This document shows positions 18,528-36,997 of a DNA stretch of 64,000 bases, one piece after another; within the stretch, counting starts at the first letter, position 1, and the number at the start of each line of letters is the position of its first letter. This stretch comes from Mantamonas sphyraenae STR306 (taxonomy: Eukaryota > Protista > CRuMs), in NCBI GenBank assembly GCA_026936335.1, contig JAPMXV010000059.1, forward strand, positions 124,001 through 188,000. The letters run 5' to 3'. The notes below the pieces were generated by a model. That model was not told where the DNA came from, made no database searches, and was given only the letters and a program-made list of their open reading frames with translations. A program made the translations under genes and the position numbers.

Positions 18528-21500
18528 TCAGATGATCAACTTGTCGAGTTGGGCCTTCATGCCACGACGGGACCGTGTCTGCCGTGCGTCTTCGTCCTCT
18601 TTGATCTCCTTGCCAAGCTTCTTGGCCAGGCGAAGCCTGCGTTCGCGATGCTGGCCCTCCTCACGCCTGCGTGCCGCGTTGCGTTGGATCATGAGCACCT
18701 CACGCATGCCTGGGTTGTGTTTGTTGTCCGCCAAGTCTTGTTGGAAGTTGGCTTGAGCCTCTTTGAGCTGCATGCTGTTTTCAAACATGCGCCGCACCTC
18801 CTCCTCGTCCCCGTTGTCCACGCTGGGCATCAGTTGGCGCAGCATCGCCTGCTCCTTCGCACTCAGTCTGCTGTACACGTCGTAATTCACCACGTCGCTG
18901 AGATCGATCCGTGCCAGCCTCGAATCCGCCGTCAACCACGCCTCGCCAAACTTGATGTCCTCCTCGCTATCCATCAGCATCCCCCCTTCATCATCGTCCA
19001 AATCGCCGTCGTCTGAGCCCCACGCATCGTCGTCTTTGCTCTTGCTCTTGCTTCGCCGCTGTCGCCTTGCGGCTGGTTTGCGCTTGCGTTTCGCAGGTGG
19101 CTGCTTCAACGTCCCTTCTGGAATCTCTGCTTCCTTTTCGATCACCAGCCGTTCCTGTGCCACCCCGTCGCCCGATGCGCCACCAATGCGCAGCACAATC
19201 CGAGTGGTGATGGACGAGGGAGTTGTGGACGTCGTGCTTGATGACGTGGAGCTTGCTGTTGTTGTCGTGTTGCCGCCACTGCTGCTGTTGCTGTTGTTAG
19301 TAGTGTTGTTGTTGGTGGTGCTGCTGCTGCTGTTGATGCTGTTGCTGTTGTTCACCGGTTCTGTGTCCATGCTATCCTTGCTTTCGTCGCCTGCCTTTCC
19401 TTCGTCGATTGCCTTGCCTTCATCGCGTGCCCTGCCTGCATTTGGCTGTGCTTGTTCCTTGCGATGCTTCTGCGGCGGTTGAAAGGAGCCGCCAGTGCGT
19501 GCCACGGACGAGGTGCTGTCTGACGAGGACATGCGAACACGTGCCATGCCACTTGTGGAAGCCATGTTGCTGCTGTTGCTGCTGTTGCTGCTTCTATGTG
19601 CCTCACCTACTGTCTCAGCTTGCTCCACCACGTGCAGCACCACGTCTGTGTTGTCCTCCACCAGCGACCGTTCCAGCAGCTGCTCCTCGTCCTGTGCCTC
19701 CTGTCCACGTCCCTGTACCACCATGGCACTGTCCCCCATCTTCTTTGCGGTCGGTTTCACCACATCCATGGGCTTCGAGTTGCTGAACGTGCTGGGCCGC
19801 GGGCTGGCCAGGGTACGTGCTGTGTTGACATTGCCACCACTGGTCGTTGCCATCCCAACACCACCCATGCTGCCTCGGCTTGCACTCCTGCTGTTGCTGC
19901 GAGCGCCATTGGGGGGCGGTGTCGGCGTGCCCAGAGCACTGCCCCCTCGATTCACGCTCTCCGACACGGGCGAAATGAACCCGGGACGTGGGATGCTATC
20001 ACGCATCGACACAGGCGTGCTCGTCATGTTGCGTGCCATCAGTGCACTCCTGGGCGTCACAGGCGAGGTCTCCGGCGTGCTACTGCCGCCACCACCACCA
20101 CCGCCACCGCCGCCACCCTCTGAACTCTGTGACAGCGAACTGCCGGGCCGCGATCCCGATCGCCATCGTCGGTCCGTGTACACCACTTGCGCGTCGTAGG
20201 AGAGGGCTGCGGTGCCGTCGCTGGAAAGCACGAAATCAATGCGTCCTGCGTCCAAGAGGTCGCCCAGGGTGTTGATGCGCGGCACCGTGCTGCGCTTGAC
20301 CAGCACCAATTGCATGCGACTGACGTCGTCCTGTGTGATGGGCTCCTTCTTCCAGAACTCGTGCGAGTAGATGCACGAACGCACCGAGGAACGCCAATTG
20401 GAGGCGGCCCCCAGCTTGCGCAGCACCCCCTTGCGGAAGATCCACGTCCGATTGCCTGCGTAGTCGTACAGGTCCTCGTATGTACACCGGCCCCCTTTGG
20501 CCTCCTCCATCATCACATGTTTCACCATGTGCAACACAGAGTCAAACACGAGTGTGCCCCTGTCCAACGCGTGAACCGTCGCCTTGAACCGTTCCAGCTC
20601 CGCTCGCCGCTCGCCACTCAACGCCTTTTCGGGCGTCGTGTGCACTCGCCCGCCACTTGCACGCGACCCCGAACGCCCCTTGGATGGTGTCGATGCCTTT
20701 TTGCCCTTGCCGCTGCCCTTACTTTTGCCCTCCTTCTTCTTGCTCGGCGTGCTTGTGCGCTTCCTGCTTCCTTTCGCCTTGCTGCTGCTCTTGCTCTTCC
20801 CAGGCCCTCCTGATGCTTCCCCCGCCCCATCGCCTCCAGATGTTCCTGTTGCTGTCCCTACCAGCTCGTGGCCGTCTGTGCTGCTGCCACTGCCGCTGCT
20901 GCTGCTGCTGCTGCTGCTGCTCGGGTCGACCTGTCCGCCGTGCCTGATCTGCGCGAGGCCCTCTTTGTCCTCGACCTGCGCAAGCGTCAATGGCGCAGGT
21001 GCTGACGCCATTCCATCTGCAGGATGCAATTGGGTGCGTGCACGCTTCTCCCAGGGCATTTCCGTGTTGCCGTCCGGCATGGCTGCAAAGAGGTCTCGCG
21101 GAGCGCCGGACAGCTGAGTCGCTTCGGCTCCAGCCTCCTCCTCGGCCTCTTCTCGTAGCCGCTTGTGCTGGCCCGTGTGCAGCGAGGTGACCCGATGGAA
21201 CGGAGTGTTGTGCATGTGCATGTGCAACGCAGGCTGTGTGTGCACGTGGTCTGTGTGGTTCATCATCATCTCCGGCTCTTCCTCCTCCTGCGGCTCCGAC
21301 GCCTGCACGTCCTCTTCCTCTTGCGCTCCCAGTTCGGCCCACAACAGATCTTCCGCCGAACGCGGCCTTGGCGCAAGCCTGGGGTGCGTGCGCACGTGTG
21401 CGTCCCCCGACATGGCCATTGCACCCATGCCCGCCCCCATCATGCCACCCATAGCCCCCACGCCTCCACCCATTCCGTCGCGGGCGCTGTCATAGATCAG

Positions 21501-21740
21501 TCGCAACTGCAACTCTGCGTCCATCCCGTCCACATCGTCGTCGTCGTCGTCGTCCACGTCGTCATCCACCGTCAATCCCCGTCTGTCCGACAGCTGTTCC
21601 CGCTCCTCCTCTGTGTCGTGCCCTGCGTCGTCCATGCTGTGCACCAGAAAGTGCCTTGGGGCCAGCACCATCTGCTCCTCCTCTTCCTCCATCATGTCCT
21701 GGTGATGACCGTGTCCACCCTCATGATGGGAAGACCACAT
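18528..21740 (-). CDS. Low-complexity protein with forkhead-like winged helix and C-terminal DEUBAD-like domain; start uncertain
   Basis: SVLHMVKHVM..CTYEDLYDY..NWRSSVRSCIYSHEFWKK; DSRLARIDLSDVVNYDVYSRLSAKEQAMLRQLMPSVD..FQQDLAD. Confidence 0.6.
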   Translation of the reverse strand: MWSSHHEGGHGHHQDMMEEEEEQMVLAPRHFLVHSMDDAGHDTEEEREQLSDRRGLTVDDDVDDDDDDDVDGMDAELQLRLIYDSARDGMGGGVGAMGGMMGAGMGAMAMSGDAHVRTHPRLAPRPRSAEDLLWAELGAQEEEDVQASEPQEEEEPEMMMNHTDHVHTQPALHMHMHNTPFHRVTSLHTGQHKRLREEAEEEAGAEATQLSGAPRDLFAAMPDGNTEMPWEKRARTQLHPADGMASAPAPLTLAQVEDKEGLAQIRHGGQVDPSSSSSSSSSGSGSSTDGHELVGTATGTSGGDGAGEASGGPGKSKSSSKAKGSRKRTSTPSKKKEGKSKGSGKGKKASTPSKGRSGSRASGGRVHTTPEKALSGERRAELERFKATVHALDRGTLVFDSVLHMVKHVMMEEAKGGRCTYEDLYDYAGNRTWIFRKGVLRKLGAASNWRSSVRSCIYSHEFWKKEPITQDDVSRMQLVLVKRSTVPRINTLGDLLDAGRIDFVLSSDGTAALSYDAQVVYTDRRWRSGSRPGSSLSQSSEGGGGGGGGGGGSSTPETSPVTPRSALMARNMTSTPVSMRDSIPRPGFISPVSESVNRGGSALGTPTPPPNGARSNSRSASRGSMGGVGMATTSGGNVNTARTLASPRPSTFSNSKPMDVVKPTAKKMGDSAMVVQGRGQEAQDEEQLLERSLVEDNTDVVLHVVEQAETVGEAHRSSNSSNSSNMASTSGMARVRMSSSDSTSSVARTGGSFQPPQKHRKEQAQPNAGRARDEGKAIDEGKAGDESKDSMDTEPVNNSNSINSSSSTTNNNTTNNSNSSSGGNTTTTASSTSSSTTSTTPSSITTRIVLRIGGASGDGVAQERLVIEKEAEIPEGTLKQPPAKRKRKPAARRQRRSKSKSKDDDAWGSDDGDLDDDEGGMLMDSEEDIKFGEAWLTADSRLARIDLSDVVNYDVYSRLSAKEQAMLRQLMPSVDNGDEEEVRRMFENSMQLKEAQANFQQDLADNKHNPGMREVLMIQRNAARRREEGQHRERRLRLAKKLGKEIKEDEDARQTRSRRGMKAQLDKLII

Positions 21741-22168
21741 TCTCTCCAGCCACACCTTTTGTTTGGGAAAGGGAAAAAAACCAGAGTGTTGTGGGGAGAG
21801 AAGTGCGGATGTGTTGGCAATCGCTGCGCAGTTGGTTGCAATTGAGCGTGAACGTGGCCCTCACCACCGAGAACAACGCCCAAAAACACATAGAATGTTC
21901 ACCGAGGCATGATATCACTCCTCTGTGGGTTCTTTGTGATCACAGAGATGTTCACACCCCGCTCATGGCTGTGCTAACGGCCAATCGTTCCCACTCCCCT
22001 CGGTTTCCACGCGCACTGAAAGAAGCTAACCAAAGTCATCTAAACAATGGTGACAATGAATCCTTGCGAACAATGCATTGTGTGGACGAGAAGGGATGTC
22101 AAGCAGGTGTGATGGACAAGGCGCACCAGACGCCAACCTGACGGATCAGAAATTGTCACCAAACCAAC

Positions 22169-23209
22169 ATGCCCAGTGCAATGAACCCAACGTTCAAGAT
22201 CAACACACACGGTGGGGTGTACAAGTCTGGTTCAGCCATCCCGGAAGCGATGCGTCTCAACATAGGAAACGGCTACCTGACCGCAAACCCCCCGCAATCA
22301 ATGAAGCAGGTAGCCTTGCACTGGAAGGTCAGCGTAGGTGCTGTGCACAAGTACGTTGCCCAGTTTCGTGCCACAGGAGGTGTGGCACCTCAACCTCGTG
22401 CGGGTGGGCGGCCAGAAAAATTGCAGGCGCACCACAAACGATTCCTGGTCCGCCTCATAGCGAAGCACAGTGCCACGTATCTTGATGAGATGCAGCTGGC
22501 TTTGACGAGACAATTCAATCTTCGAGTTTCCCTGTCTACACTGTGTAGATTCTGCCAACGGCATCAGTTGCGACTGAAAAAGTTGAAGATTGTCCCTGCT
22601 GAACGCAAGAAGCCGCACGTGCGTGCGCGGCGGCGCGATTTTGAACGGCTACAACGTACAGATGCACGAATGCGCGCAAGGAATGTAGTGTGGGTCGACG
22701 AGACTGGAGTCAACAACCGCGAGTGTTGGCGTCGCCGTGGAAGAAACAAACCGGGCGTCGACGCCCTCTCTGTGCAAACCTACTCGCGCCAGAGACGGAG
22801 TATCTCTGTACTGGCGGCCATTGGAGGCGGAAGGCATGGTCTCATGTGCTGGCAGACGCGGACTGGGGCACACAAGCGTGTGGATTTCCTTTTCTTTTTG
22901 CGGCATCGCTTGCTGCCGCGGATGCAACGGTACAGGCAGTCAGTCATTGTGTTGGATAACTGCTCGATTCACAAGGGGGACGAAGTGAAGCAGCTGTGTG
23001 CACAGTACGGCGTCGAGCTGGAGTATCTCCCGGCGTATTCACCATACCTCAACCCCATCGAAGAGATGTTCAGCAAATTCAAGGCCATGCTGCGGCGGCA
23101 CCACCATCGCATGGACATCTGCACAGAGGCTGCCATAGACCATGCCCTACATTTTGTAGGATGGCGGGAAGTGAACGGATGGATCAAACACTCGAACTAT
23201 GTGGCATGA
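22169..23209 (+). CDS. IS630/Tc1/mariner superfamily DD34E transposase, intact and intronless
   Basis: VWVDETG, VIVLDNCSIHK, YLPAYSPYLNPIEEMFSKFK with 34 residues between D and E; N-terminal HTH regions. Confidence 0.95.
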   Translation: MPSAMNPTFKINTHGGVYKSGSAIPEAMRLNIGNGYLTANPPQSMKQVALHWKVSVGAVHKYVAQFRATGGVAPQPRAGGRPEKLQAHHKRFLVRLIAKHSATYLDEMQLALTRQFNLRVSLSTLCRFCQRHQLRLKKLKIVPAERKKPHVRARRRDFERLQRTDARMRARNVVWVDETGVNNRECWRRRGRNKPGVDALSVQTYSRQRRSISVLAAIGGGRHGLMCWQTRTGAHKRVDFLFFLRHRLLPRMQRYRQSVIVLDNCSIHKGDEVKQLCAQYGVELEYLPAYSPYLNPIEEMFSKFKAMLRRHHHRMDICTEAAIDHALHFVGWREVNGWIKHSNYVA

Positions 23210-23454
23210 TGAAACGCGGCAACGAAGTTTCTCCAACTGAATCAGCAGTATGGTGTCCCACACTCCCTGCACGCCGTTCACAGCAGCCCAAAAACCGAAC
23301 AAGACCACTCTACACACCACGGGAAGGACGCATAGCCGTCTGTTGCCCGAATCGTTCAGCACTGATCTCTAACCCAACCACCACCGCGGTGTCCAACACA
23401 CCCTGCACACAATCACCAGCAATCCACAACCGACATGTGCCACACGGCATACCA

Positions 23455-24225
23455 CGAGAGAGTTGCAGTGGCAAGGCCGTCCCGCGCGTGTACAAACCTC
23501 CTGACCAGGCGTTCTCTGTGCTGGCGATGAAAAATCCGTACCAAACTGGCTGAGCAAATCCTCCTTCGTCTGTGCGAGGGGGGCGAACTTGTTCTCCAAT
23601 GGGGCTTAGTGGGGCGCCGCATAGCACAGAGAATGGGTGTGGTCTGCACGTCTAGCCGTGCAACTCTTCACGAGAAGAAATGAAGAAGCGTTTCAGCTTC
23701 CACACCAACTGCCCACAATCTCCCACCATTGTGGACGCTTCACCTGGGCACTGGGCAGGGCGCTTGCACCCACTCGCAAAGAGTCGTCTTGAATCACCCG
23801 CCCTGCGTCGCACAGCGTGTGTTTGAGGCACACATGCTGGGGTACACTGCCTGTGACCAGCGTGGAGCTATGCATTGGCTGATGCCCGCACTGAGGGAGA
23901 ATATGATGCAGTGGGTGGGACAGGAGCATGATACAGAGACTCTGGCGAGGAGTGGGGCAGTCTGCCACAAGGGGGGGGCATGGGGAAGCGCAAAAGGGAA
24001 TCAATCACCTACAATGTGCCCCATGCCTTCATGCAATACCGTGTTGGAGAGCATCTACCCCAGCATCTACCCCAGTTGAGGGCGGGAGAGCGAGGATGCC
24101 TGGCGGATGTCCATGCGTGCATGATCTTCCTGACTAGCTGAGCAAATCCTCCTTCATTTGTCCAAAGGGCGAGTTTCCTCTCCAATTGGGCTGAGTGGGG
24201 CGCCACAGAGCACAGAGAACGTCGC
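23455..24225 (-). pseudogene. Two diverged copies (c. 23455-23635 and 24085-24222) of a decayed minus-strand coding segment
   Basis: Both copies read SVLCGAPLSPIGE..RP..EGGFAQ..LVR..HA; differences are mostly synonymous and each copy has a frame-breaking indel relative to the other. Confidence 0.5.
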
Positions 24226-24320
24226 TGCAGTGCGTAGCAGATGCTGCACCATGCTTCCCAACTCAATTGACAGCCTCCCTTCATTGTCGACGTTTCAACT
24301 GGGCAACCCGCTTGCATACA

Positions 24321-24358
24321 GTACGACGACTCTGTGCAATTGCACAGAGTCGTCGTAC
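24321..24358. repeat. Perfect 38-bp palindrome
   Basis: GTACGACGACTCTGTGCAA|TTGCACAGAGTCGTCGTAC. Confidence 0.97.
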
Positions 24359-24713
24359 CACCACACCCCCTTCTGTGGTGTGTTTTGCTTTTGCATCTTT
24401 TCTCCTTGTGCAGCCTTGGCCACCCCTCGCGCAGCACATGCCCAATGTGGTGAGGTCGAGCCAGAGGTGATGGACGGTGTGTACGCGTGTTTCCGCTTGT
24501 ATGTGATTGGTTCGTTCATAGAAGAGCTCTATGTAGACGGTGAGATGCTGAAGAACATATCGCCGCCCGGCCCGCTGCGCACAGGCGCTACACCGCGCCA
24601 CACTGTATCATCTGCACACAACCAAACACACGAGTGTAAAAAGCAACTTTGTATTGGTGGGCATCGCTGGCCAGTGCCTTCCCAATCGGCCCCTTGCTCA
24701 GGCAACACAACGC

Positions 24714-27700
24714 ATGGTCAACAACAGATACAATCTGCGGTCCACCCGTACTACACGAACAACAACTGGCACAGACTCCCACGCCACAACCACTGGTGAG
24801 ACGCCAAGCTCTCCCGCCGGGGCAGCAAGGCAGGCAACGAGTGCATCGGAATCGCATCAGCAGATGCGCAACGTTATTGACGTTGAATACGTATTCAACG
24901 AGCTGTGCAAAGGTACGTATGGCCTGGATTGCAGGGTCTATGCAGAGAGACACTCACACGTGCTGCCCTGGGTAGTTTGGGACACAACGCCACAGAACCA
25001 GCGTGCAGTTGCTCTCGCTGGCGTTGCTGACGCACTTTCCCCGAGCACACGCACTGTTGCCGACGCCGTGGAGCATCTGAACACAGTGACGGATGTCCGT
25101 GCCACTGTAGCAGAGTGCAAGAGAGGCATAGAGTAAGGTTTTTTCTGGCGCGTGTCCGGCGCGGCTCGTGCCTTTGCTGACAGGTCTCTCGAACCCACGT
25201 CTCAAAGGAACCCGATGGCATTGTTGTGTCACGCTACCGTCGCCGTGCGTGCGCTGCTTCTCAGTGTTGGCGCGAACGGGCTTGTGGCTCTGGACGTGCA
25301 TGATGATTGCAGGTGGCAAGGCAGGTGTCTAGTAGGTCTCTTCGCCTACCTCACCGGAATGGAAGGCATTCCTGCTGACGACAGCACAGTATGGATGCTC
25401 CTGCTACATGCAGACGCCGTTGTTTCCAACTCCGGGCTTGTGAGGCACCAGCAAAGCTCGACTGAGACGTAGGTTGCGAGAATCGACCCCACACACGCGC
25501 CCACACGCGCGCCGCCACGCGCGCCTGCACCCTGCACACACACACTCACCCCACGCCTCCCATTCTCCCGCAGTTATGGGTGTTTGTGGGCAACCTTCTG
25601 CAGTTGTGTCGATAGCAAGCATGCCATTCGTGCGTTTGACACCAGTCGCGTGCCCTTGGACGACAGGGTGCTGGCAAACGAGAAGCACGTGGCACTTTTT
25701 GAGGAGGCCAAAAACGCTGGCGTCCCGTCTGCACTTTCAACAACAACCAGGGAGGCTTTTTGTTCGTGTGGCAACAAGGTGACCAGTGTGGAAGCACAGG
25801 CGAGCATTGCAAGCGTGCCTGCTAACAGTGGCCACGTTGCAGAGTTCCAATGGACATGCTCTAGTGGAAGATGCTCAACGGTGATTGGCACGGAAACAGA
25901 CGAGATCACCTGCACCGAAAACTGTTTGATCACGTACGAACGCAACTCCGTCGTGGAGCGGATGGACGTCAGTGAGGCCATGTGCATCGGCATCTATCTG
26001 GGCGATGGTTTGGCAGGCCACTACGTACTCGTCCTGCGTGTGGACGACACGCATTGGCGAGTGTTTGATGACGATCGCGTTCACGACGACTACTCATCGT
26101 ATGTGGATGGGAACGTCGTTCTGCAGCATGGAACACAGGCGCGTGTTGTGTTCTCCATGGGCTCCACCTCTCCGATGTCGCTTTCACGGGCGCCTGTGCG
26201 GGTGCAACAGGCAGCAAGGAACCAGGTTGCCCAGCAGCAGAAGAAGGGAAGGCAGGGAAAGCAACCAAGGAAGGGGAAGCCGGGAAAGCAACCAAGGAAG
26301 GGGAACCGGTCACGCAAACGCCACAAGCCCAGGGTCCATGAGGCCAAAGTCCACGATGAGCAAGTCCGGTTCGATAACGAAGCATCACGTGAGGATTTGG
26401 TGACCGGCATTGGCCACGGGATGCGCAACACCGCCCTGAAGTACGTCGACGACGAGCAGGTGGATGCCACCTGCGTGTGGTTCAGCGAACAAGGCACTGT
26501 GCAGCGCACGGGTGACGTGCGTGACATCGAAAAAGAGCTGAAGAAGGAGCTGCCAAACGGCAAAGTGTCCAAGAGCAGTTTGGAAGCGTTGGTCAAGCAG
26601 AAGGAGGCAACGGAGGAGGCAGGGCAGATGGAAGAGACCCCGGGGTTGTCGTCAAGCGTGGTTAACATCCTGGATTTGGCGAGCGTGGCCTTTGACAAGA
26701 TGACTGTGGACCACGTGCGCGGCACGCACCCCGTTGTGGTTTGCCTTGGGCTGGCCACCATGGAAGATGTGCTGCGAGGTTCGCCAGGAGTCACAGCTGC
26801 CCAGCAACAGAGGCTGCTTATTGCCCTTAGCACAGTGGAGAGTACCAACAGGAAGCGCAAGAACAAGATCAAGCCGTACCTGACATTGCAGAAGCTCGTT
26901 GAGGACTTCCGGCCCGAGTCAGTCGAGGACATCGCACAGCGTCTGCGAGAAGTGGACAACGAGCATACCATCTGGCTGAGGGCGCACACAACGTACCCGA
27001 GAATCGTCGAGTGGGTTGGCGCCCTGTTTCTGCTCTCGCAGGGCATTAACGAGAACCACTTCCGACTTCAGGTCATCAATCGCCGAGGGAACGTGACGAA
27101 AGCCGTCTCTGGTCCCGACTGTGTGGCCAGGGCTGTATCGATGGCTTTCAGTGTGCAAGGCGGTGCCCGGTGGGTTTTGCCGCGGCGACCAGCGCAAGAC
27201 CAGCCTACGGGGGTGGTTGCCAAGGTGTCTCTGGCTCTCGAGCTGGGCAACGGCAGACTGGCGTTGGCCATCATCATGGCTGGCAACAAGGACAACGATG
27301 TGTTTCAGCGCGTCTGTGAAAACATCAACGTGCTGCACAACTCGAACGTGCCGTACACCCACCGCACCAAAGAGTGGACACGCGACCTCAGCGAGGACAA
27401 ACCCCTGGACGCCGTTGTGCGCTACCTGCAACACGAGTTGGCACCGCAGCTGGACGGCACTGGCGCGACTCTGGGCAGGGACGGGTTGATGGTGCCAGAT
27501 GGCGCGACTTTCCCGCTGACCAGGCTCCTGCGCACTCAATCAAACGCTCTCAACGGCTGCTATACCGCTCTTCAACTCTTCCAGTCACTCCGGTTTCGGG
27601 TGAAGCGTGTGCTTGTTACCGACGAGGACCTGGAGCACATCAGGGCAGAGTCGATGTACGACGAAACCCAGCGAGGCATGGTTTATCACACCGGTGCATT

Positions 27701-30527
27701 GCACGGCCAGAAGATGACGGCACGTGCCATTGGGACTCTTCAGGATCGCCCAGAGTTCACAAGGGAGCAACCGCCCGCGCCGCAAGGCCTGACCAGGCCA
27801 AAGAGCGCAGCCGAATCCCCGCCCAAGGACAAGAAGGAGCTCGTATCACAAGTCTCGACGATCCTTCAAGGGGCCCTGGACGATGTTTTCCCCGGCAATG
27901 GCAGTGTGGTTCCCTTCGATCTCGGTCTGCTGCACGCGATTGCCAGCGCCGGTGAAACTCGGTTCCACGCTATGAAAGTGGAGAACAGTGTCACGGTGAT
28001 GCACCTCACCCGCAAGTTTGCCAACCTTGTGCCCAGTGTGATGGAAGTTGCCGGCAGAGTGTTGGCAGTCGCCAGCGCATGGGAGTGCGACGATGCTCAG
28101 GAGAAACTCAAAAGCATCCAGACGTTGGTGGATCGCTACATCATCAGCGGCTCAAGTGACTCCCTGGTGGGAGATCTACTCTCCCATGCCGGAAGGCCGT
28201 TAGCCATCAACACCGAAGGGCACGTTGTCGTTGACGACGGCCGTGGCGACCACACGCTGGACCTGGACCTGACCGCAGCAGGAGACCTTGGGCCCGCCAC
28301 ACAGCACATGCGTGCGATGCTCAGCGACCGGCTGCGCAACGAGCTGAAGAAGATGGTGACCTCGAAGCAGACACTGCTCTTCTTCGCCCTGGTGAAACAC
28401 CAAACGACCATGGCCACAGATGATGTCGACAAGGCGGAGCAGATGGTGGTGCTTGCGGCGTGCGACGCCATCGTTGCCCACTACGGCGAGACACGCATCG
28501 TGCCTGCGCTGGCCCGGCACGGCGTCGGAAAAGACTACCTTGGCGTCGTTCACGATGTCTTGCAAGCAGAAGCGAGAGAGACAAGGTCCAGGGCGCAAGA
28601 GCAGGCCATCAGGACGGGGAACGAGCTCAGGCAGGAGCCAGAGTACGAGGCTGCCCATGCTGTTGCGGTGCGCGTCCTGGGCGAGATGGACGAGAAGAAG
28701 TCGATGCTGGCCACCAAAACCACAGGCAAGAGGGCAAAACAGACGCGACACATCTACTTGTGCATCCTCCATGGCCTCATCGAGGATGTCGGCGACGAAC
28801 ACAGCGTCAACGCAGTCGACTTTAGCCCAGCGGAGGCTAAACGATTGCTGGTTCCGTTCCTACTCCACAGTGATGAGCGATGGAAGGACGTGCACGCAGG
28901 AAAGCTGAACAGTGGGGCGTGTGGCCGTGTGCTCAAAGCGTGGAAGGAAGACCTAAGCAGCATCCCGGAGGATGCGGCGTACTCGCTTTCGTGGTGGCGG
29001 GTACACGCGTGCGAACCTGGACCCCTGCTCGATGATCTGTTTGCGAGCCTCATTGCACACGCTCCCGTGGTTGAACATATGAGGCCGAGCCAACTGTTGA
29101 GATGGAAAGGGACTGTGCGAGAGTCAGACGCAGGCGCGGGTGTCTCGATTTTCTATCCGCAGAACCTTGTGTCTGACCCCATGACGCGTGGTGACCCTGC
29201 TCTGGTCACGAGGATGGAAGAAGAGTGCCTGCGTCATCTTTGGTACATCTTTGCGGAACTTCAAGTCCGCCGCGGGAACGGCGACACGAGCAACAAGGAC
29301 AAGAAGAAGAACTGGTTGAACAAGCTGACGGCGCCCCTGTTCACAACTGCAATCAACATGTTGCAATTCACGGATGAGTTGCCCCCGTGGATGGCAAGGT
29401 TCATTGCAAAGGAGAACTGGAACCATCTGAAGGACATGGGAAGCAAGGTTGGCAAGCGCGGTGTGTACAAGTTCAGAGACATCGGGGGTTGGAGTACGAA
29501 GGAGAGTGGTGAAGCAGCAACGGGGGAAGAGACGGGAACGAGCAGCCCGGAGAACGAGACACAGGCGTTGGGCACGGAGGCTGGCGATGGAGCGCAGGAC
29601 AGGGAGGAGGACGTGGCACGGGCGCTTGGCACAGGGGCTGACGATGGAGCGCAGGACAGGGAGGAGGACGTGGCACGGGCGCTTGGCACAGGGGCTGACG
29701 ATGGGGAGCAGGACAGGGAGGAGGAGACACAGGCGTTGGGCACCGAGGCTGACAACGGTGCGCAGGACAGGGAGGCGGAAGTGACTAGTGGTGGCATGGA
29801 GAGCGAGCAGGACGAGTCGCAGACAACACCCGCTTGGAAAGAGATGGTCAACGATACCCTCTTTGCTTTTGTCGACTGGGGCGTAACGCGTGACACTTGG
29901 GTTCTCATGTGGACGCACAACGACACAGTGTTCCAGATGTCCGTGCCGACCATGACTCACAACGAGATGAGGCAAAGGAAAGGGGGCACACGCACACAGG
30001 CCCGTTTCCTCAGAAGGACAATCGACAAGACGCTGGAGATGATGTCCGACAGGGACATGCCCAAGAACCATGTGCTTGTGGTTGGAGGCAAGAAGCAGTC
30101 AAGCCTGGGGGGACGGACGGGAGACGTGCTGGACAGGCTCGCCGCGTACTACAACGTGGTCAAGGACCTCGACGAGTATCGCACATCCAAGGTGCACAGG
30201 TGTGGGAAGACACTCAGTTTCAACACCAATGTGTCGCGTAAACCTCTGGGCAGGCTCCAGTTCTGTCCCCGATGCAGCAGATCGCGCAACCACCACACAC
30301 GCAAGCAGACCTTATTTGCACTGCTGCAACGGGAAATTCACAACGACGTGAAGATTCCGCTGCACGTAGCAATGCAACGAGACCAGCACTCGTGCGAGGC
30401 ATTTTTCTGGATCACTGTGGAGCAGATCAAATCGGGACAACGACCCGTTCCATTCAGCAGGCCGAGCGAAGCAGCAGTCACGGACACGTCCAATGATCAT
30501 ACCAACACCACTCAAACGGAGGAGTGA
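24714..30527 (+). CDS. ~1885-aa Fanzor (TnpB-family) nuclease with N-terminal USP/peptidase C19-like domain; exons 24714-25132, 25184-25468, 25574-30527
   Basis: Two phase-2 GT-AG introns join three ORFs in frame; RuvC motifs FVDWG, VLVVGG, LDEYRTSK, HRC..FCPRC, QRDQHS; USP motifs NPMALLCHATVAVRAL, HQQSSTE, GHYV..WRVFDDDRV. Confidence 0.85.
29556..29774 (+). repeat. Four coding tandem repeats of about 57 bp (18-19 aa, ALGTxAxDGAQDREE) inside the Fanzor ORF
   Basis: Direct reading of DNA and protein. Confidence 0.9.
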
Positions 30528-30765
30528 GTGAACATGATCTGATGCAGCTCCATCGACGACGGGAGCTGCTCGAAGAGACGGAGCACATCGAGCGCAAGCC
30601 ACCGCTCGATGTTCAAGCAAAATAACCAGGGCATCCAGCAACGACGCCCTGGTAGCCATTGTCCAGAAGCAAGCCAACTTTTGGGCATGGTCGAGTATTT
30701 GTATGTAGTGCGTTGGCGTGCGTTCACGCACTTACGAGAAATACAGCGCACACACCCGTTCATTG
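30528..30765 (+). ncRNA. Putative Fanzor omegaRNA: scaffold of five hairpins (30544-30744) plus candidate 3' guide (c. 30745-30765)
   Basis: Stems 30544-51/30562-69, 30585-94/30603-12, 30625-32/30646-53, 30655-69/30678-91 (G-U pairs), 30695-713/30726-44, directly after the Fanzor stop. Confidence 0.7.
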
Positions 30766-30821
30766 CCTCCTGAATCTCTTCCCATTCTCTCTCACGCCTC
30801 TCTCGCCCCGTGCAGCCCGGT

Positions 30822-33223
30822 TCATACCATGTTGCAGATCTTGTCGCGGTACTCGTCGATGTTGTCGTGGGTGAGGACCACCAATTGGCGCTTGGTCAGC
30901 GGCTTCTTGGTCAGCGGACACACGTTCTTCGTGGCCATGTTGTTGAGACAATTGATCCAGCTGCTCATGTCCATCACGTGGCCGTACGGCGAAATGGCGG
31001 GTTTTTCCACCTCTTCCAGCGTGATGGGATCCACAAAGCCCGGCAGCGGGTTTTCCGGGTTGCTCTCGCGCTTCTCCTCAAAGATCACGCTGTCCACAGG
31101 CACGTACATGCGCTTGCTCGTGTTGCCATACTCATCTTCCACCTCCTCTTCCTCCACCTCGTCCCGTCGTCGCTTGTGACTGCGCTTCTTGCGTCCCTTC
31201 TTTGCCGGCTTCTTCTCCCCCGCCACCCGTTGTGTCTGAAACACCAGCGCCGGCCCGCTGGGCAGCGAGCTCACGTTGCCAACCGCACCCACGTCCACGG
31301 ACATGGACATGGACATGGACATGGACGCTGCTGCCGCCGCAGCACTCGTCAGCGTGTCCATGGACAGCGCCGACACCGCGGCGGCGTGTTTGCTGCTGCC
31401 ACTGCTGCTGGCACTCGATGCGCTGCCTGCGCCTCGCTTGCGTGCACTGCCGTGTGAGTTGAGACGCAAGATCTGCTCCTGTGCCTGCTTCACCAGTGCC
31501 GAGTGCTGTGCGTTCTTTGTGGCCTCGCTCAGCTCGCTCACGCCCGAGCGCCGGCGTCGGTCCTTGGCAAAGATAAAGTGGGCCTTGCCCTTGTCGTCCA
31601 GGTAGTAGTTGGGATCCTTGATGATGCCCTTTTCCAGCTGGTTGCGGTAGAAGTTGGAGCATTGGTAGCCCACTCGGCCCGGTATGGCCATGCTGAAGAT
31701 GCCCCACTGGCCGTTCACGCCCAGCTGAGCCACACGTTTGTAGAACAGCTCCTGCTCATGCGGCTTCCACGCCCCGTTGGCTTGCGGCTCCCCCGGCGCG
31801 TTGAAGCGGTAGTAGTACGCGTTGGGGTTGGTGTCGATGCACGCGTAGGCACGGATGCGTGCCGGCGACCAGCCCTCGAACGAGTCCTTCTTCTTCAGGG
31901 CGTCGTCCAGACGCAGCCGCGAGCGCACGTAGCTCGACTCGTTTGTGCTCGACTTCTTCTTCTTGGTGCTCCCACCCGTGGTCTTGGTGCGCCCTGTGCG
32001 CTTGCGCTGACCTTCGTTGCGCACCATCGAGGCCATCGAGCGCACATGCTGTTGGCACAGGTTGTGACGCACGTGCGTCAGGTAGAGAAAGTCCGAGAGT
32101 GCGCTCACCGCCTCGTTCTCGTCGTTCTCCTGCTCCTTGATCGCATACTCCGCCTCTGCACGCGTCACAAAGTTCAGCATCGACATCACCTGGTTCACCT
32201 TCATGCGCATCTCTCGTCGCTCAAATTCCTGGTACTGCCGCTTCTTCTGCTCCACTCGCGTGTTGATCAGGTCCTTTTCGTCGTCGTTGATGTCACCTGC
32301 AAACATGTCCTTCTTTCGCACTCGGTCCAGTGACAGGTCAGCTGCAATGCGCCGCAACAGGGGCATGGATGGATTCAAGGCACATGGTCAACCCCGCTGG
32401 TGTCAGTGGTTACGCGTCTACGGCTTTGTGCAAGGTGTGGGAGACGGTTTTCGGGTGGGGTGATCAGGGGGCACCAGGAATTTGGCGCCTAGCCACCCGT
32501 TGGCCGCCTTTAAAAAGGCGAGGGTCACCTTGGGCCAGAACGGACGGTGGAGACGTCGCATAATGGCATGCACCAGGCGTGTGGATGTATGCAGACACGG
32601 CACTCACCTTTGACAACGAGTTCCTGCAGACCCAAGTCGCGTTCGCTGGTTGGCTGATCAGGCAAAAGCGCGCGCTTTTCTCGCTGCGTGCGCAGACGGG
32701 CCAGGATGTCATCTTCGTGGCTGTAGGCGGGACGCCCGTCACATTTGACCTTGGACGACACATTTGTGGGACTTCCAGGCATCATTTTGCTGAGAGTGAT
32801 GATCTCGCTGCCTGTAGAGTCGACGACGGCCGACGCCGCCGCGCTCGACGACTCTGTACGACGCACCTGCGCCTGCTGCTCGCCCGTACGCATGCCTCCC
32901 GAGCTGCTACGTGACGACGACGAGGAAGAGGAGGACGTGTACTGCTCCGTCGATGCACTTCCCGTACTGCTGCCTGCCTCGCTGTGCCAGTCTTGGGCGC
33001 GAGTGGTGCCTGACGCCGAACGACGCGCCGTGGCAGGCCCTTCACGTCGCCCTGCACCAGCGCTGCGGACCTTGCTCGCCGCCTTCTGGCTCAATTCATC
33101 CTCCAAATAGTTGCGCTTGGGCTTCAGGTCCAGGGTCACCTGCTTCGGCTGACGTGTGCCGCTGCGTCCGCGTGACTTGCTGCTGCGCGTCGACCGCACC
33201 GCAGGTTGTGTTTCGATTTCCAT
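30822..33223 (-). CDS. Myb/SANT-like protein with C-terminal U-box/RING-like domain, two exons
   Basis: NPNAYYYRFNAPGE..GAWKPHEQELF..WGIFSMAIPGRVGYQCSNFYR; FVDPITLEEVEKPAISPYGHV..CPLTKKPL. Confidence 0.75.
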
Positions 33224-33473: not shown

Positions 33474-35843
33474 CTAGAGGCCTTGCAGCAGCTCCTGCTT
33501 TCGCTTCTGCTCCTCTTCCTCGAGCACCTTTTCGCTCGCCACACGCTCTGCCTCTGCTTGCATGACCTTGGTCAGCCGTGTGAACACCTCCTCTGTGCTC
33601 TGGAATGTGGTGATTCTCTTCAGCGTTGCCTGTTCCTCCTTGGCATCCGAGGAAAACGCAACTCCCTTGCCCTTGCTACGGTGATGCTCCTCCTGCGCCT
33701 CTTGCTGCTTCTGCATCTCCTCCTCCACATCTTCACGTGTAACCACCACCAACTCTCCTTCCTCCCGTGCCCGTTGCTGCTCCTCCATCTCGTCGTCTGT
33801 CATCGCACGCAGGGTTCCGTCCAGGTTGGCCGTGATTCCCTTCAAATCCGAGCGTTCAAGCTTGACAAAGCAATCTCGCTCTGCTCGCGACAGATGATCT
33901 CGTGCAGACTTGTCAATTTGGATGTGGTTCATCTCTGCCGTGGCCTCGAGGCGAGCGGCAAGCACCACCGGGAATCCCCCCACCTTCCAGAAGCGACGTT
34001 GCGACCCATACACGCCACTGACCACCTCTCCGTACGCGATCCCGATGCGTGCACCCAACATTTCCGACTCTTCCGACGCAGTCTCTGCATCTTCCAGGTC
34101 GTCGTCCTCGTCGACGCTGGACGAGCTGCCCATGCGCGTGCGTGCAGCAGCAGCCTGCTCCGCGCTCAGCGACGACACCGATGTGTTGCGAGCCCAGTCG
34201 ATCATCTCCACGGCGGCATAGAGAGCACGTCTGCACGCGTGCCTGCCTGCGGAAAACGCAAGCACGCTGTCGCCTTCGTGATCCACCACGTCCAGCTTGT
34301 ACTTCTCGGCGATGCGATCCAGGGCACTGTACGTCACCTTGTGGTGACTGTGCAGCAACCCAAAGTTTTCTTTGTGCTTGGTCACCCAGCTGGTGTAGCC
34401 CTTCTGGTCCAGCAGCAACACGGCGCCTTTGAGCACCTCAGGGTCCTCCAGGCTGGCGTTGTCGGACCAGGCAAGACGACGCGGCAGAGTTGCATTCAGG
34501 ATGTTTTGCTTGGCTTCACGCTTGGTGACATACTTGGAGGCGTCGAGAAAGTTGGCACACAGCAGGTCGTCCTTGAGTGTCCACACCGTCACTTTGATGG
34601 GAAACAGTTCCGGTCCACGCGGTCCCATGCGCTTGCCCTTCAGCGACAGCTCTCGGTTGAGCACCCTCGACTCACGGTCGCGTGCCTTGTCACGTCGGAA
34701 GCGTCGCAGGAAGCGGTCGTGCATCTCGGCAATCTCGTCGGGCATCAACATCTTGATGTTGAATTTCTTCTCCACGCAGTAGTCGATGTTGATGCCAAAC
34801 ATCATGGCGATCTTGTCGTTGCCAGCCAGGATGGTGCCGTGGGAATCGGCCATGAGCTGGCCAACCACACTCTCCTTGAAGACCCGTCGGTACACGACCT
34901 CACCACGACGCGCCTCCGACACATCCTCCAGCGACTGTATGGTCATGACAAACACCTTTGCAGGCTCGGCGCCATCGGCCAGGCTGGTGTTGAACGCCAG
35001 CGGACGCAGAAACCACGAGATCTTGAACTCCTCCTCGCGGCCGTGTTGGTTCAGACGGACGGCTTTGGTGATCAAAGGAGTGTCTGTGTTGACCAATTGC
35101 GACGGTGGCAGTTCGCCCGTCTTTTGCCACCGCTTCATGAAGGATTTGATGTAGTTTCCATGGCCCTTGCGCATGCTGCGTGGCATGATGACCTCGATGT
35201 TTTGCCCACGCAGCCATGATCCCGTCATTCTGAACATTTTCTCAAACTGCTCATTCACCTGCATGATGCCCAGGTCGATGTGGTAGACAAGGACGGCATC
35301 TGACATGGTTTCCATCACAGTCTCGGCCAGCAGGCTGTTGATCTGCGCCTGCACCAACTCTGACCGCAGATCCTCGACGCTCTCCATTGCCTCGACACTC
35401 TGTTGGACCTCGCCGCTGTCCACATAGCGTCCAATCTTGCCCACAAGCTCCAGTTGGATGTTGACGCCGCTGTCATCGGGTTCGAACGAGCTGCTGTGGC
35501 TGTGGGGGTAAGATCCGTCCGTGGATACGGATCGGGGAGAAACGGCGCCGTCACGTTCCTCCTCGTCCGACTTGACCACATCCACCGTCTCCTCGCCACT
35601 TGAAGAGATGTCCATGCTCTTGTCCGACGAGTCGGATGCTTCGGCATCCGACTTGTCGACATTGTTGGACGCCGAGTCGGCGAGCGTCTTGGCTCCAGAG
35701 CCCGAAAACTCTCCGGTTCGCTTTTCCTTCTCTGGGGTCCGCAGTGCGGGAGCCAAGCTTGAGGATGCCGAGGACCGGAAAGACGAGCTGTACGTCGAAG
35801 AGGAATATGCAGAAGTGCGGTACCCGCCGGGGCTGAACGACAT
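33474..35843 (-). CDS. PAS-PAS class III nucleotidyl cyclase-like protein
   Basis: ETMSDAVLV..GIMQVNEQFEKMF..GQNIEVIMP; ADSHGTILAGN..NIKMLMP; LLLDQKGYT, EGDSVLA, RIGIAYGEVVSGVYG, LAARLE. Confidence 0.8.
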   Translation of the reverse strand: MSFSPGGYRTSAYSSSTYSSSFRSSASSSLAPALRTPEKEKRTGEFSGSGAKTLADSASNNVDKSDAEASDSSDKSMDISSSGEETVDVVKSDEEERDGAVSPRSVSTDGSYPHSHSSSFEPDDSGVNIQLELVGKIGRYVDSGEVQQSVEAMESVEDLRSELVQAQINSLLAETVMETMSDAVLVYHIDLGIMQVNEQFEKMFRMTGSWLRGQNIEVIMPRSMRKGHGNYIKSFMKRWQKTGELPPSQLVNTDTPLITKAVRLNQHGREEEFKISWFLRPLAFNTSLADGAEPAKVFVMTIQSLEDVSEARRGEVVYRRVFKESVVGQLMADSHGTILAGNDKIAMMFGINIDYCVEKKFNIKMLMPDEIAEMHDRFLRRFRRDKARDRESRVLNRELSLKGKRMGPRGPELFPIKVTVWTLKDDLLCANFLDASKYVTKREAKQNILNATLPRRLAWSDNASLEDPEVLKGAVLLLDQKGYTSWVTKHKENFGLLHSHHKVTYSALDRIAEKYKLDVVDHEGDSVLAFSAGRHACRRALYAAVEMIDWARNTSVSSLSAEQAAAARTRMGSSSSVDEDDDLEDAETASEESEMLGARIGIAYGEVVSGVYGSQRRFWKVGGFPVVLAARLEATAEMNHIQIDKSARDHLSRAERDCFVKLERSDLKGITANLDGTLRAMTDDEMEEQQRAREEGELVVVTREDVEEEMQKQQEAQEEHHRSKGKGVAFSSDAKEEQATLKRITTFQSTEEVFTRLTKVMQAEAERVASEKVLEEEEQKRKQELLQGL

Positions 35844-35874
35844 GCTGAAAAGGTTGGTTTGCTGTGTGCGAATT

Positions 35875-36049
35875 TCACTTCCCTTCTTCATCCCCCTTTG
35901 AATGCACTTTGATGTCCTCAAGCTCCACATCCTGCGATCCGTACACTCCTGTCTCTGCATTCTTGCTGTCCGAGTCTGTGGCAGACTCTGCGGTGGCCTG
36001 CTTGTCCTGAATGGCCGCGTCCTGATTGCCTTCTTCCGCATCATTGTCA

Positions 36050-36088
<39 letters not shown>

Positions 36089-36997
36089 TCCTGTTGCTGG
36101 GCGGCAGCGAGCACACGCTGGCTCAGCTCATCCTGTGTGCCCTTGCGCACGCACCAGAGGTACATGATCAAATTGAACACGCGTTCAAACAGCGCAAACT
36201 CGTGGAACATGTGCACGTTGCCGTCGTTGGTGAAAAGCTGCAGAACATCGCTGTAGCTCTGGCCCTTTTGCAGGTTCGGCACGTCTGTGGGAACGTAGAC
36301 GGCGACCCCGCCGGCCTTTTGTTTGATGGCGACGGCGAGGCGCACGTCGATGACGTCGTCAAAGCAGATGGACACCGGAATCAGTTCGGTTTGATTCTTT
36401 TCTGCGTCCTTGTAGTTGCACAGGAAGCAGAAGTAGCCCTTGGTGATGAACGCCACGCCCGTGTACAGCGACGTGCTGATGTTTGTGGCCAGCGCGTCTG
36501 CAAACAGCTTCTCGTCTGCGGGAAGGTCAAAGTGTTTGTTGAACTGCTGTTCCCTGTCGCCCAGCTTCAGGGCGCTCTTCTCAGCCATGCGGCTCGCCTT
36601 GGCGCTCGCTGCGTCCACTTTGTCCTGCGCCTTCTGCATTCCTCGATCCATCTTTTTGCCCAGATTGGAAAAGAACCCTCCTGTGGTGGATTGCCGGTGT
36701 GTGTATGAACGGCACGTGCGTCCGTGTTTCCTGTGAGTCGCGTGCGAGTGTTTCCTGCTCGCGGCCGCACACGTTTCCCACCGCCGCGCTTTTCCCATCG
36801 TCCCCTCGACCCGTCACACACCTTCGCTCTGCGGTGTTCCGCCCAAACGGGTTTCACGTCCCACACATGCCCATGCCCAGTCCGATCAGTGCAGTGTAGC
36901 ATGTCAGCCGGTGTCCCTGCGAGCGAATCAACTGGAAGCTTCCCGTGTCGTCCACCGTGACGACGCCTGCACTTCCTCTCTGACCCGCCCCTACCAT
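35875..36997 (-). CDS. GRAM-domain-like protein; main exon 36681-35875, 5' micro-exons inferred
   Basis: QFNKHFDLPADEKL..LYTGVAFITKGYFCF; possible ATG-only exon at 36997 and 7-nt exon 36828-36822. Confidence 0.6.

Follow-up and report, generated by a model that had tools for sequence, protein, structure and literature searches.

A multicopy transposon of Mantamonas sphyraenae whose giant Fanzor-type nuclease is joined to a probable USP-fold domain

Mantamonas is a deep-branching lineage near the base of Amorphea. Mantamonas sphyraenae is a free-living protist of the CRuMs group (PMC10492846), and we analysed a stretch of 64,000 nucleotides of its genome (contig JAPMXV010000059.1, positions 124,001 to 188,000), hereafter called the window. 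A DNA search of the genome (25,061,354 bases in 78 contigs) identified in it a multicopy DNA transposon of 8,918 bp (21829-30746, + strand), which encodes a transposase of IS630/Tc1-mariner type and houses, as its cargo, a gene for a very large Fanzor-type nuclease with a probable USP-fold domain in its N-terminal part. Fanzors are RNA-guided DNA nucleases, related in eukaryotes to CRISPR-Cas12, and USPs are proteases which remove ubiquitin. Profiles, a language model and structure comparisons speak for the fusion, as does its conservation between the copies of the element. The gene had been noticed in a sequence-only reading of the window; the transposase, the ends of the element and the copy family are context added here. 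The coordinates of the features are collected in Table 1.

The transposon, its copies and its cargo gene

The element is bounded by imperfect terminal inverted repeats of 26 nt, which share one core equidistant from both ends. The left end has 18 matches across the genome and seven copies have both ends: that of the window and those designated C11, C46, C43, C41, C2 and C51. C11 and C46 are 97-98% identical to the window, the cargo of C43 is about 75% identical to it and frameshifted, and C41 and C2 encode a cargo protein 39% identical to that of the window, with a transposase that is decayed or absent. C51 (L015) is a non-autonomous copy of 842 bp, reduced to its two ends, the final RuvC codons and the 3' RNA. 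Eleven left ends (L016-L022 and others) have no partner among the right-end matches listed and may belong to elements with other cargo. The transposase, composed of a helix-turn-helix and a DDE domain with a DD34E spacing counted on the translation, matches Pfam DDE_3 at 2e-24 and NCBIfam IS630 with 142 bits for a cut-off of 100; it is 99% identical in C11, C43 and C46, and intact in four copies.

The dinucleotides flanking the two ends match in six of the seven copies (CG, GT, CG, CT, CA and CA), and the duplication of C46 fits only if one extra base is allowed. A TA duplication was found in none of the seven two-ended copies, which present CG, GT, CT, CA or TT instead; the duplicated target dinucleotide varies and lies within TG-NN-CA (21827-21828 and 30747-30748 in the window; L011-L024). 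This constant absence of TA departs from the IS630/Tc1/mariner rule, and we do not count the element among the canonical members of that group. A duplication of 4 to 5 bp (NNCA) was also considered, but the 2-bp reading better fits the symmetric inverted repeats and copy C41, and neither of the two is TA.

The different parts of the element may not have the same history. The first 500 bp of C41 are 97% identical to the window, yet its cargo DNA is at noise level, and the synonymous divergence (dS) between C41 and C2, which is 1-1.5 for the middle of the protein, drops to 0.04 for its C-terminus. Since the ends are much more alike than the cargo, this suggests that the cargo was swapped between elements or that the ends were converted, for which chimeric Mariner-Fanzor elements with shared ends and different cargo offer a precedent (PMC3627910). 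The spacer between the two genes has features of its own: in C41 (L013:7270-8190) it contains a tandem array of units of about 143 nt related to window positions 23250-23490, a 76-bp piece of it (23876-23951) has at least nine other genome matches at 86-88%, and its 38-bp palindrome gave only chance microRNA rows against Rfam.

For the cargo gene, the sequence-only reading had proposed a two-intron model coding for 1,885 aa. That model is in frame and all the codons it named were located where they had been placed (Cys 25227, His 26019, Asp 26067, Asp 29874, Glu 30174 and Asp 30381), but the comparison of copies favours three introns, four exons and a protein of 1,856 aa. The added intron 1 is open in the window, with a length of 63 nt; it measures 61, 71 and 65 nt in C43, C46 and C2, and in these three copies reading through it meets stops. 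Because it is open in the window and its codon-position GC is coding-like (over 20 codons only), we consider its splicing likely and go no further. Introns 2 and 3 are very probably spliced: they stand at the same codon and in the same phase in both lineages of copies, have GT donors and a length free to vary, and present a branch-like CTGAC, CTCAC or CTAAC in most copies. The acceptor of intron 2, placed earlier at 25183, was set aside for 25207 (CAAAG), the most likely one from the cross-copy evidence, because the AG near 25183 immediately follows a branch-site-like CTGAC (GCTGACAG) and is missing in C43, and because 25207 gives an exon of exactly 261 nt in the window, C11, C46, C41 and C2, with one identical Cys-box spacing (GI-x-N-x5-C). 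Position 25183 may possibly be used as a minor acceptor site. The USP His and Asp lie with the RuvC in one unbroken frame of 1,637-1,685 codons in the window, C11, C41 and C2, so that the fusion is independent of splicing, and only the Cys box is predicted to depend on splicing for its joining to the nuclease.

A divergent nuclease of the TnpB/Fanzor superfamily and its candidate RNA

The C-terminal part of the protein is its most conserved one. The RuvC motifs and the long frame described in the sequence-only reading are real, as they are conserved across diverged copies, and in a profile of 12 family members D-E-D, TS, three Cys and RD are invariant. The shifted Glu (E 30174) was confirmed too: it is invariant and located 9 residues before the first Cys and 30 after the VVGG strand. 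The loss of the canonical RuvC-II Glu in favour of an alternative one just before the zinc finger is a character of TnpB and Fanzor proteins, and so is the association of a eukaryotic transposon with a conserved structured RNA, here a predicted structure, at its right end. The 220 nt or so which follow the stop fold far better than shuffled sequences (z of -4.6 for the window and -4.0 for C2), and stems are kept across copies with one clear two-sided and two one-sided changes, a weak covariation drawn from two sequence types only. The predicted RNA stops where the element does, a feature shared with published Fanzor RNAs; no Rfam family corresponds to it.

The library evidence came from several directions. 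The window's own RuvC piece had no match in Pfam or in PDB sequence searches, and the assignments of both domains needed sister copies and profiles, because both pieces have diverged too far in the window for Pfam to recognise them. The family profile aligned in register with the Fanzor1 of Parasitella parasitica (E 0.86), returned Fanzor1-like proteins with weak TNB matches from 1.84 billion proteins, and reached 1.5e-10 against a transcript product of Mantamonas plastica; one Fanzor1-like protein gave an HH probability of 96.5% across all three RuvC motifs, and Pfam TNB matched weakly nine of the 12 family members, the window row not being among them. A model of the last 729 residues had a mean confidence (pLDDT) of 58, and over its residues 515-727 the VIA structure search returned Cas12j (Z 13.1), PpFz1 (12.1) and SpuFz1 (10.9), in a range of Z from 13.1 to 9.1 which covers Cas12j, Fanzor1, Cas12f and TnpB. 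Foldseek alone was not significant for this model, and the Atlas rows for the RuvC piece fell in TnpB/Fanzor clusters. Profile rows for Cholera toxin B and P0001/P0002 were discarded as chance or repeat-driven. By its motifs and its predicted structure, the domain is a RuvC of TnpB/Cas12 type with a zinc-ribbon insertion, belonging to the TnpB/Fanzor superfamily in the broad sense of PMC10530073.

The earlier identification as a Fanzor stands for the type of RuvC but not for the strict hallmarks of Fanzor1. The stretch 29103-29156, proposed as a Fanzor1 WED motif, is only a predicted beta-hairpin without the defining TDG, for which we found SDAG in the window and SSAG and SSSG in C41 and C2. 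Instead of a REC2 made of long kinked helices, the model contains one 22-residue helix, and no structural match was reported for the REC-like region 28284..29480. Of the motif of Bao and Jurka, D-X(125,275)-[TS][TS]-XX-C4 finger-X(5,50)-RD, the elements D, TS and RD are there, whereas the spacer measures 102 and the finger is of the HxC..CxxC type. In a tree of 22 rows, built without TnpB or Fanzor2 outgroups, the Mantamonas rows form a separate group on long branches. Because of the missing TDG, the short REC2, the three-Cys finger and the spacer of 102, we place the protein, as judged from sequence and model, in the TnpB/Fanzor superfamily as a divergent lineage which is Fanzor-like but not Fanzor1 proper. 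An acidic tandem repeat precedes RuvC-I; in C46 (L023:1400-4900) it has grown to several kb and the frame is broken.

Such a nuclease probably works like a Fanzor, through RNA-guided cutting. The short REC2 region, the altered RuvC-I (DWG) and the three-Cys finger would also fit a RuvC which no longer cuts double-stranded DNA, in which case the RNA-guided protein would only bind, and so bring the protease and the middle domain to the site, whether empty or filled. None of the three acidic residues varies across families, however, and they lie within the most conserved part of the protein; we hold a RuvC without cutting for hardly probable.

The family profile has 53 matches in the genome, most of them in frames of 1,400-2,250 codons and from many families, and several giant loci lie 6-7 kb from a related transposase. 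Among some 50 giant Fanzor-like loci, the USP and the middle region are confined to the six copies of the family described here; since most giant loci do without it, the USP is not needed for the spread of the lineage. A second IS630-type transposase family, 45% identical to the first, was seen 6-7 kb upstream of other giant Fanzor-like frames, and at least eight further copies of it have no giant Fanzor-like partner in the match list. Another family, of 5.5 kb (L025-L033, e.g., L026:3955-9404), has at least eight copies without transposase or introns and ends in CCAACAAT; it too has a structured 3' region, and the motif RRSARI stands at the C-terminus of its protein. The search for homologues with the same fusion, suggested by the sequence-only reading, was fruitful inside the genome, with six copies, and gave none outside it in limited searches: no relatives were returned among same-size proteins by the USP region, by the USP profile or among same-size proteins by the RuvC region, and nothing came from viral contigs, these searches being limited by length and shared words.

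The probable USP-fold domain and what the fusion might do

The USP motifs announced for the N-terminal part were upheld in their order, in the His box and in the triad, all conserved across diverged copies, but the Cys and QQ boxes are degenerate. The piece is compact, with about 290 aa. Cys and R-x-QQ-x-STE of exon 3 are invariant at 37-39% identity between lineages, and Cys, GHY and W-x-x-F-x-D are so at 26-39%; a Cys-His-Asp/Asn triad in Cys box and His box is present and invariant in both lineages, the Cys box retains G, N and C, and the QQ box retains QQ. The His box aligns with those of USP14 and Ubp8. The ratio of non-synonymous to synonymous substitutions (dN/dS), 0.2-0.45 for the USP exons and 0.22-0.38 for exon 3, indicates purifying selection. 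A domain kept as a ubiquitin reader, or as dispensable captured cargo while the nuclease does the work, would be in line with the degenerate Cys and QQ boxes, with the USP, which at 27% identity is less conserved between lineages than any other stretch, and with the other families that lack it. But a dead domain need not keep Cys, His and Asp, none of which varies although synonymous sites are nearly saturated, and we regard such a loss of catalysis as improbable.

Searches pointed in the same direction with varying strength. C2 and C41 matched Pfam UCH at 4e-4 and 1e-3, and nearly all PDB sequence rows returned for the C2 piece were USPs, with USP14 on top at 0.003; for the window's own USP pieces, the Pfam and PDB sequence searches returned only the His box (E 0.043). 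The protein-language-model Atlas placed the window piece among USP clusters, some of them viral, with a borderline recognition value. In the structure checks, which had been proposed for the whole protein and were done on pieces, the RuvC fits TnpB/Fanzor, but the USP model is poor; all 50 top Foldseek rows of the fingers/palm model are nevertheless USP-fold enzymes, with E values of 0.014 or worse. A USP fold is likely on this combined evidence, and we lean towards a protease active as a deubiquitinase. We rejected the idea that a host USP gene became joined to a Fanzor by chance, as the join recurs in six copies within shared ends; outside the His box, host USPs do not match the domain.

PLpro and USPL1, which are of this fold, are among these Foldseek rows, and a V-x-GG-AR site at 27159, in the middle region, is invariant in both lineages. 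An enzyme processing the giant polyprotein, as PLpro does for coronaviruses, and so setting free a smaller Fanzor, or cutting a ubiquitin-like modifier such as SUMO, could be imagined from this, but a conserved hydrophobic stretch precedes the GG site, whose role may be structural, and there was no other evidence of processing, so this explanation seems very improbable. For the middle region itself, a PIN/FEN1-XPG identity was suspected and not confirmed, with no match from shallow profiles and acidic residues that are not conserved.

The protein starts with RYNLRS, which matches YNLR, the nucleosome anchor of foamy virus Gag (PMC12125541). The start of the sister lineage has RRSRRVA, like the acidic-patch anchor of HMGN and Dsup (PMC12487698), two other giant Fanzor-like families end in RRSARI or RRSLRI, and such anchor-like motifs were found 0 times in 23,000 background residues. 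As a lead, the tail points to chromatin.

Putting these elements together, we propose an autonomous cut-and-paste transposon of IS630/Tc1-mariner type with one spliced cargo gene, whose product of 1,856 aa would combine a short basic tail like a chromatin anchor, a compact cysteine protease of USP fold, the middle region and the Fanzor-type RuvC. The 3' end of the element would be transcribed into the structured RNA, with its last bases, coming from the host DNA, as guide; this RNA would steer the nuclease to the site that excision leaves empty, where repair of the cut from the sister or the homologue would restore the element. TnpB-type systems cut the excision site and restore the element by gene conversion, as was shown for bacterial elements (PMC13565253), and homing of Fanzors by the same route may be supposed by analogy with them. 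On the evidence of its sequence, the element has every part needed for restorative homing. The USP, predicted to be active, would be brought to this chromatin and remove ubiquitin from proteins in the vicinity, such as histones or repair factors and perhaps the fusion protein, thereby helping cutting, recombination repair or escape from silencing.

We give a probability of about 0.55 to this combination of a homing nuclease with an active deubiquitinase assisting it on chromatin; chromatin as the substrate of the protease, taken alone, stays tentative. An active protease might instead serve only the fusion or the transposase: by taking off the chains which mark for degradation, it would let a foreign protein of such size persist. 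OTU, Ulp1 and UCH domains recur in transposons and viruses with no known role on chromatin, and an enzyme acting in cis would explain the fusion and tolerate degenerate ubiquitin-binding motifs; most giant Fanzor-like proteins persist without a USP, however, and the anchor-like tail beside the USP would stay unexplained, which makes this self-stabilisation unlikely. A bolder version of the chromatin proposal, somewhat unlikely as well, would be a natural RNA-guided chromatin deubiquitinase: brought by the Fanzor module and its RNA to a target selected through base pairing and sitting on the acidic patch, an active USP would erase ubiquitin from histones or repair factors and thereby direct the repair of breaks or relieve silencing. 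The gene would then be part of a radiation, within this genome, of about 50 giant Fanzor-like genes with different accessory modules.

Several observations weigh against the homing nuclease with an assisting deubiquitinase. On the side of the protease, the Cys box has its Asn at -6, one residue longer than the canonical G-x-x-N-x-G-N-T-C, and no GN; the QQ box has lost the Asp of QQD; the Pfam UCH scores of 20.4 and 19.2 bits, obtained with single-exon pieces as queries, are below the curated cut-off of 23.9; exon 3 alone has no library match; the fingers/palm model has a pLDDT of 39.5; and the wide VIA structure search gave at best a Z of 4.9, to unrelated folds, and did not separate USPs. 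On the side of the nuclease and its targeting, the stretch from RuvC-I to II is about 45 residues shorter than in a typical Fanzor1, and the variable target duplication leaves the target-adjacent motif unclear. Finally, only six of about 50 giant Fanzor-like loci carry the USP, and the anchor motif was defined after being seen.

If the protease is active, the transposon couples RNA-guided cutting to the ubiquitin system of the host, it becomes testable how Fanzors act on chromatin and bias repair toward restoration of the element, and nature provides a design for a programmable deubiquitinase. The locus also adds to the Fanzors a new, divergent lineage, from organisms that branch near the base of Amorphea, and to the IS630-type transposases one which does not duplicate TA.

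The host genes next to the element are an ASXH/DEUBAD gene (18528-21755, - strand) and a Myb plus U-box gene (30822-32378, - strand). That both are related to ubiquitin is probably chance, because the other copies adjoin unrelated genes. Further on, 33474-36116 (- strand) is an ordinary host gene for a PAS-domain adenylate/guanylate cyclase.

Table 1. Features of the transposon and its cargo gene, in window positions unless a contig is named (TIR, terminal inverted repeat; NLS, nuclear localisation signal).
Feature	Position	Strand	Remarks
Left target duplication, 2 bp, CG	21827..21828	.	within TG-NN-CA target; copy comparison
Whole transposon	21829..30746	+	similarity between copies begins and ends at these bases
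Left end, imperfect TIR	21829..21854	+	starts CAGTTG; core GCGTGAACG 17 nt from end
IS630/Tc1-mariner transposase, 346 aa	22169..23209	+	DD34E, intact; Pfam, NCBIfam
Spacer	23210..24713	.	decayed duplication ~587 bp apart; most variable part between copies
Perfect 38-bp palindrome	24321..24358		~350 bp upstream of cargo start
Exon 1	24714..24912	+	RYNLRS at 24726-24743
Intron 1 (likely), 63 nt, phase 1	24913..24975	+	GTACGT..GGGTAG; absent from the earlier model
Exon 2	24976..25132	+	ends KRGI, start of USP Cys box; RGI kept in six of six copies
Intron 2, 75 nt, phase 2	25133..25207	+	acceptor revised
Exon 3	25208..25468	+	likely USP thumb; Asn 25209, predicted catalytic Cys 25227, QQ box 25449
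Intron 3, 105 nt, phase 2	25469..25573	+	in-frame stop if retained
Exon 4	25574..30527	+	one open frame, 1,650 codons, USP fingers/palm to RuvC
USP fingers and palm (likely)	25575..26180	+	His 26019, Asp 26067; profile, language-model, Foldseek
Basic NLS-like linker	26233..26330	+	basic in all copies
Middle region, ~650 aa	26340..28283	+	conserved; no family assigned
Helical REC-like region with WED-like hairpin (29103-29156)	28284..29480	+	AlphaFold secondary structure
Acidic tandem repeat insert	29549..29783	+	54-57 nt units, before RuvC-I; variable between copies
RuvC	29850..30470	+	D 29874, shifted E 30174, D 30381, HxC..CxxC finger, RP..FSR tail
Candidate omegaRNA scaffold	30528..30746	+	five hairpins, into right end; predicted fold
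Right inverted repeat	30721..30746	+	overlaps end of candidate omegaRNA region
Right target duplication (CG) and host flank, predicted guide	30747..30768	+	guide role taken from published Fanzors
Second-family transposase sites	C57:110906, C2:226621, C44:317879, C44:207228, C11:277669

Comparison with known systems

The Fanzor1 proteins PpFz1 (9cf0/9cf1) and SpuFz1 of Spizellomyces punctatus (8gkh) have the same rearranged RuvC, with DE-x-x-TS, zinc-ribbon, RD and RP..FSR in register, and Fanzor1s are likewise found in eukaryotic DNA transposons with a structured RNA at the right end and with introns (PMC10530073). They differ in size, with about 600-800 aa (PMC10711439) versus about 1,860 aa here; the published maximum for Fanzor1s is about 800 aa. 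Compared with them, the window protein has an N-terminal USP and a middle region of 650 aa, no TDG, a short REC2 and an HxC..CxxC finger, and its RNA scaffold is of about 220 nt. Published Fanzors are compact and we found no report of one fused to a protein-modifying enzyme; the OTU and RING fusions mentioned in the sequence-only reading were not found in the main text of two Fanzor surveys, and no report of a Fanzor-deubiquitinase or of a Fanzor in Mantamonas was found in the literature searched, mostly without subscription papers and without Repbase. The best real match outside the genome over the whole RuvC region is that of the Mantamonas plastica products EP00003 P009642/P009643 (927 and 1,048 aa), which are also short between RuvC-I and II; the M. 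plastica product P0003 has no Pfam domain and no visible USP motifs, and its place in the tree is weakly supported. The 842-bp copy C51 resembles published Fanzor ghost loci.

As for the protease, USP14, USP21, USP18, yeast Ubp8 and the compact USPs of Nucleocytoviricota have a like order and spacing of Cys box, QQ box, fingers with Cys residues, GHY and W-x-x-F-D-D, while the window USP is set apart from C19 deubiquitinases by its size of about 290 aa, a score below the Pfam cut-off, a Cys box without GN and a QQ without Asp; the collections searched contained no near relative. A comparable architecture is that of the Mariner-Fanzor1 elements PGv-1, PUl-1 and HMa-1, described by Bao and Jurka in 2013, where a Tc1/mariner transposase also lies upstream of the Fanzor gene; these are flanked by TA, whereas the window element is flanked by a variable dinucleotide in TG-NN-CA, and their extras are separate endonucleases and methyltransferases and not a fused protease (PMC3627910). 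Finally, Helitron2 elements show that a transposon can stably carry a protease of the ubiquitin system, in their case an OTU, Ulp1 or UCH domain, but their captured domains go with RepHel, not with an RNA-guided nuclease (PMC11417382).

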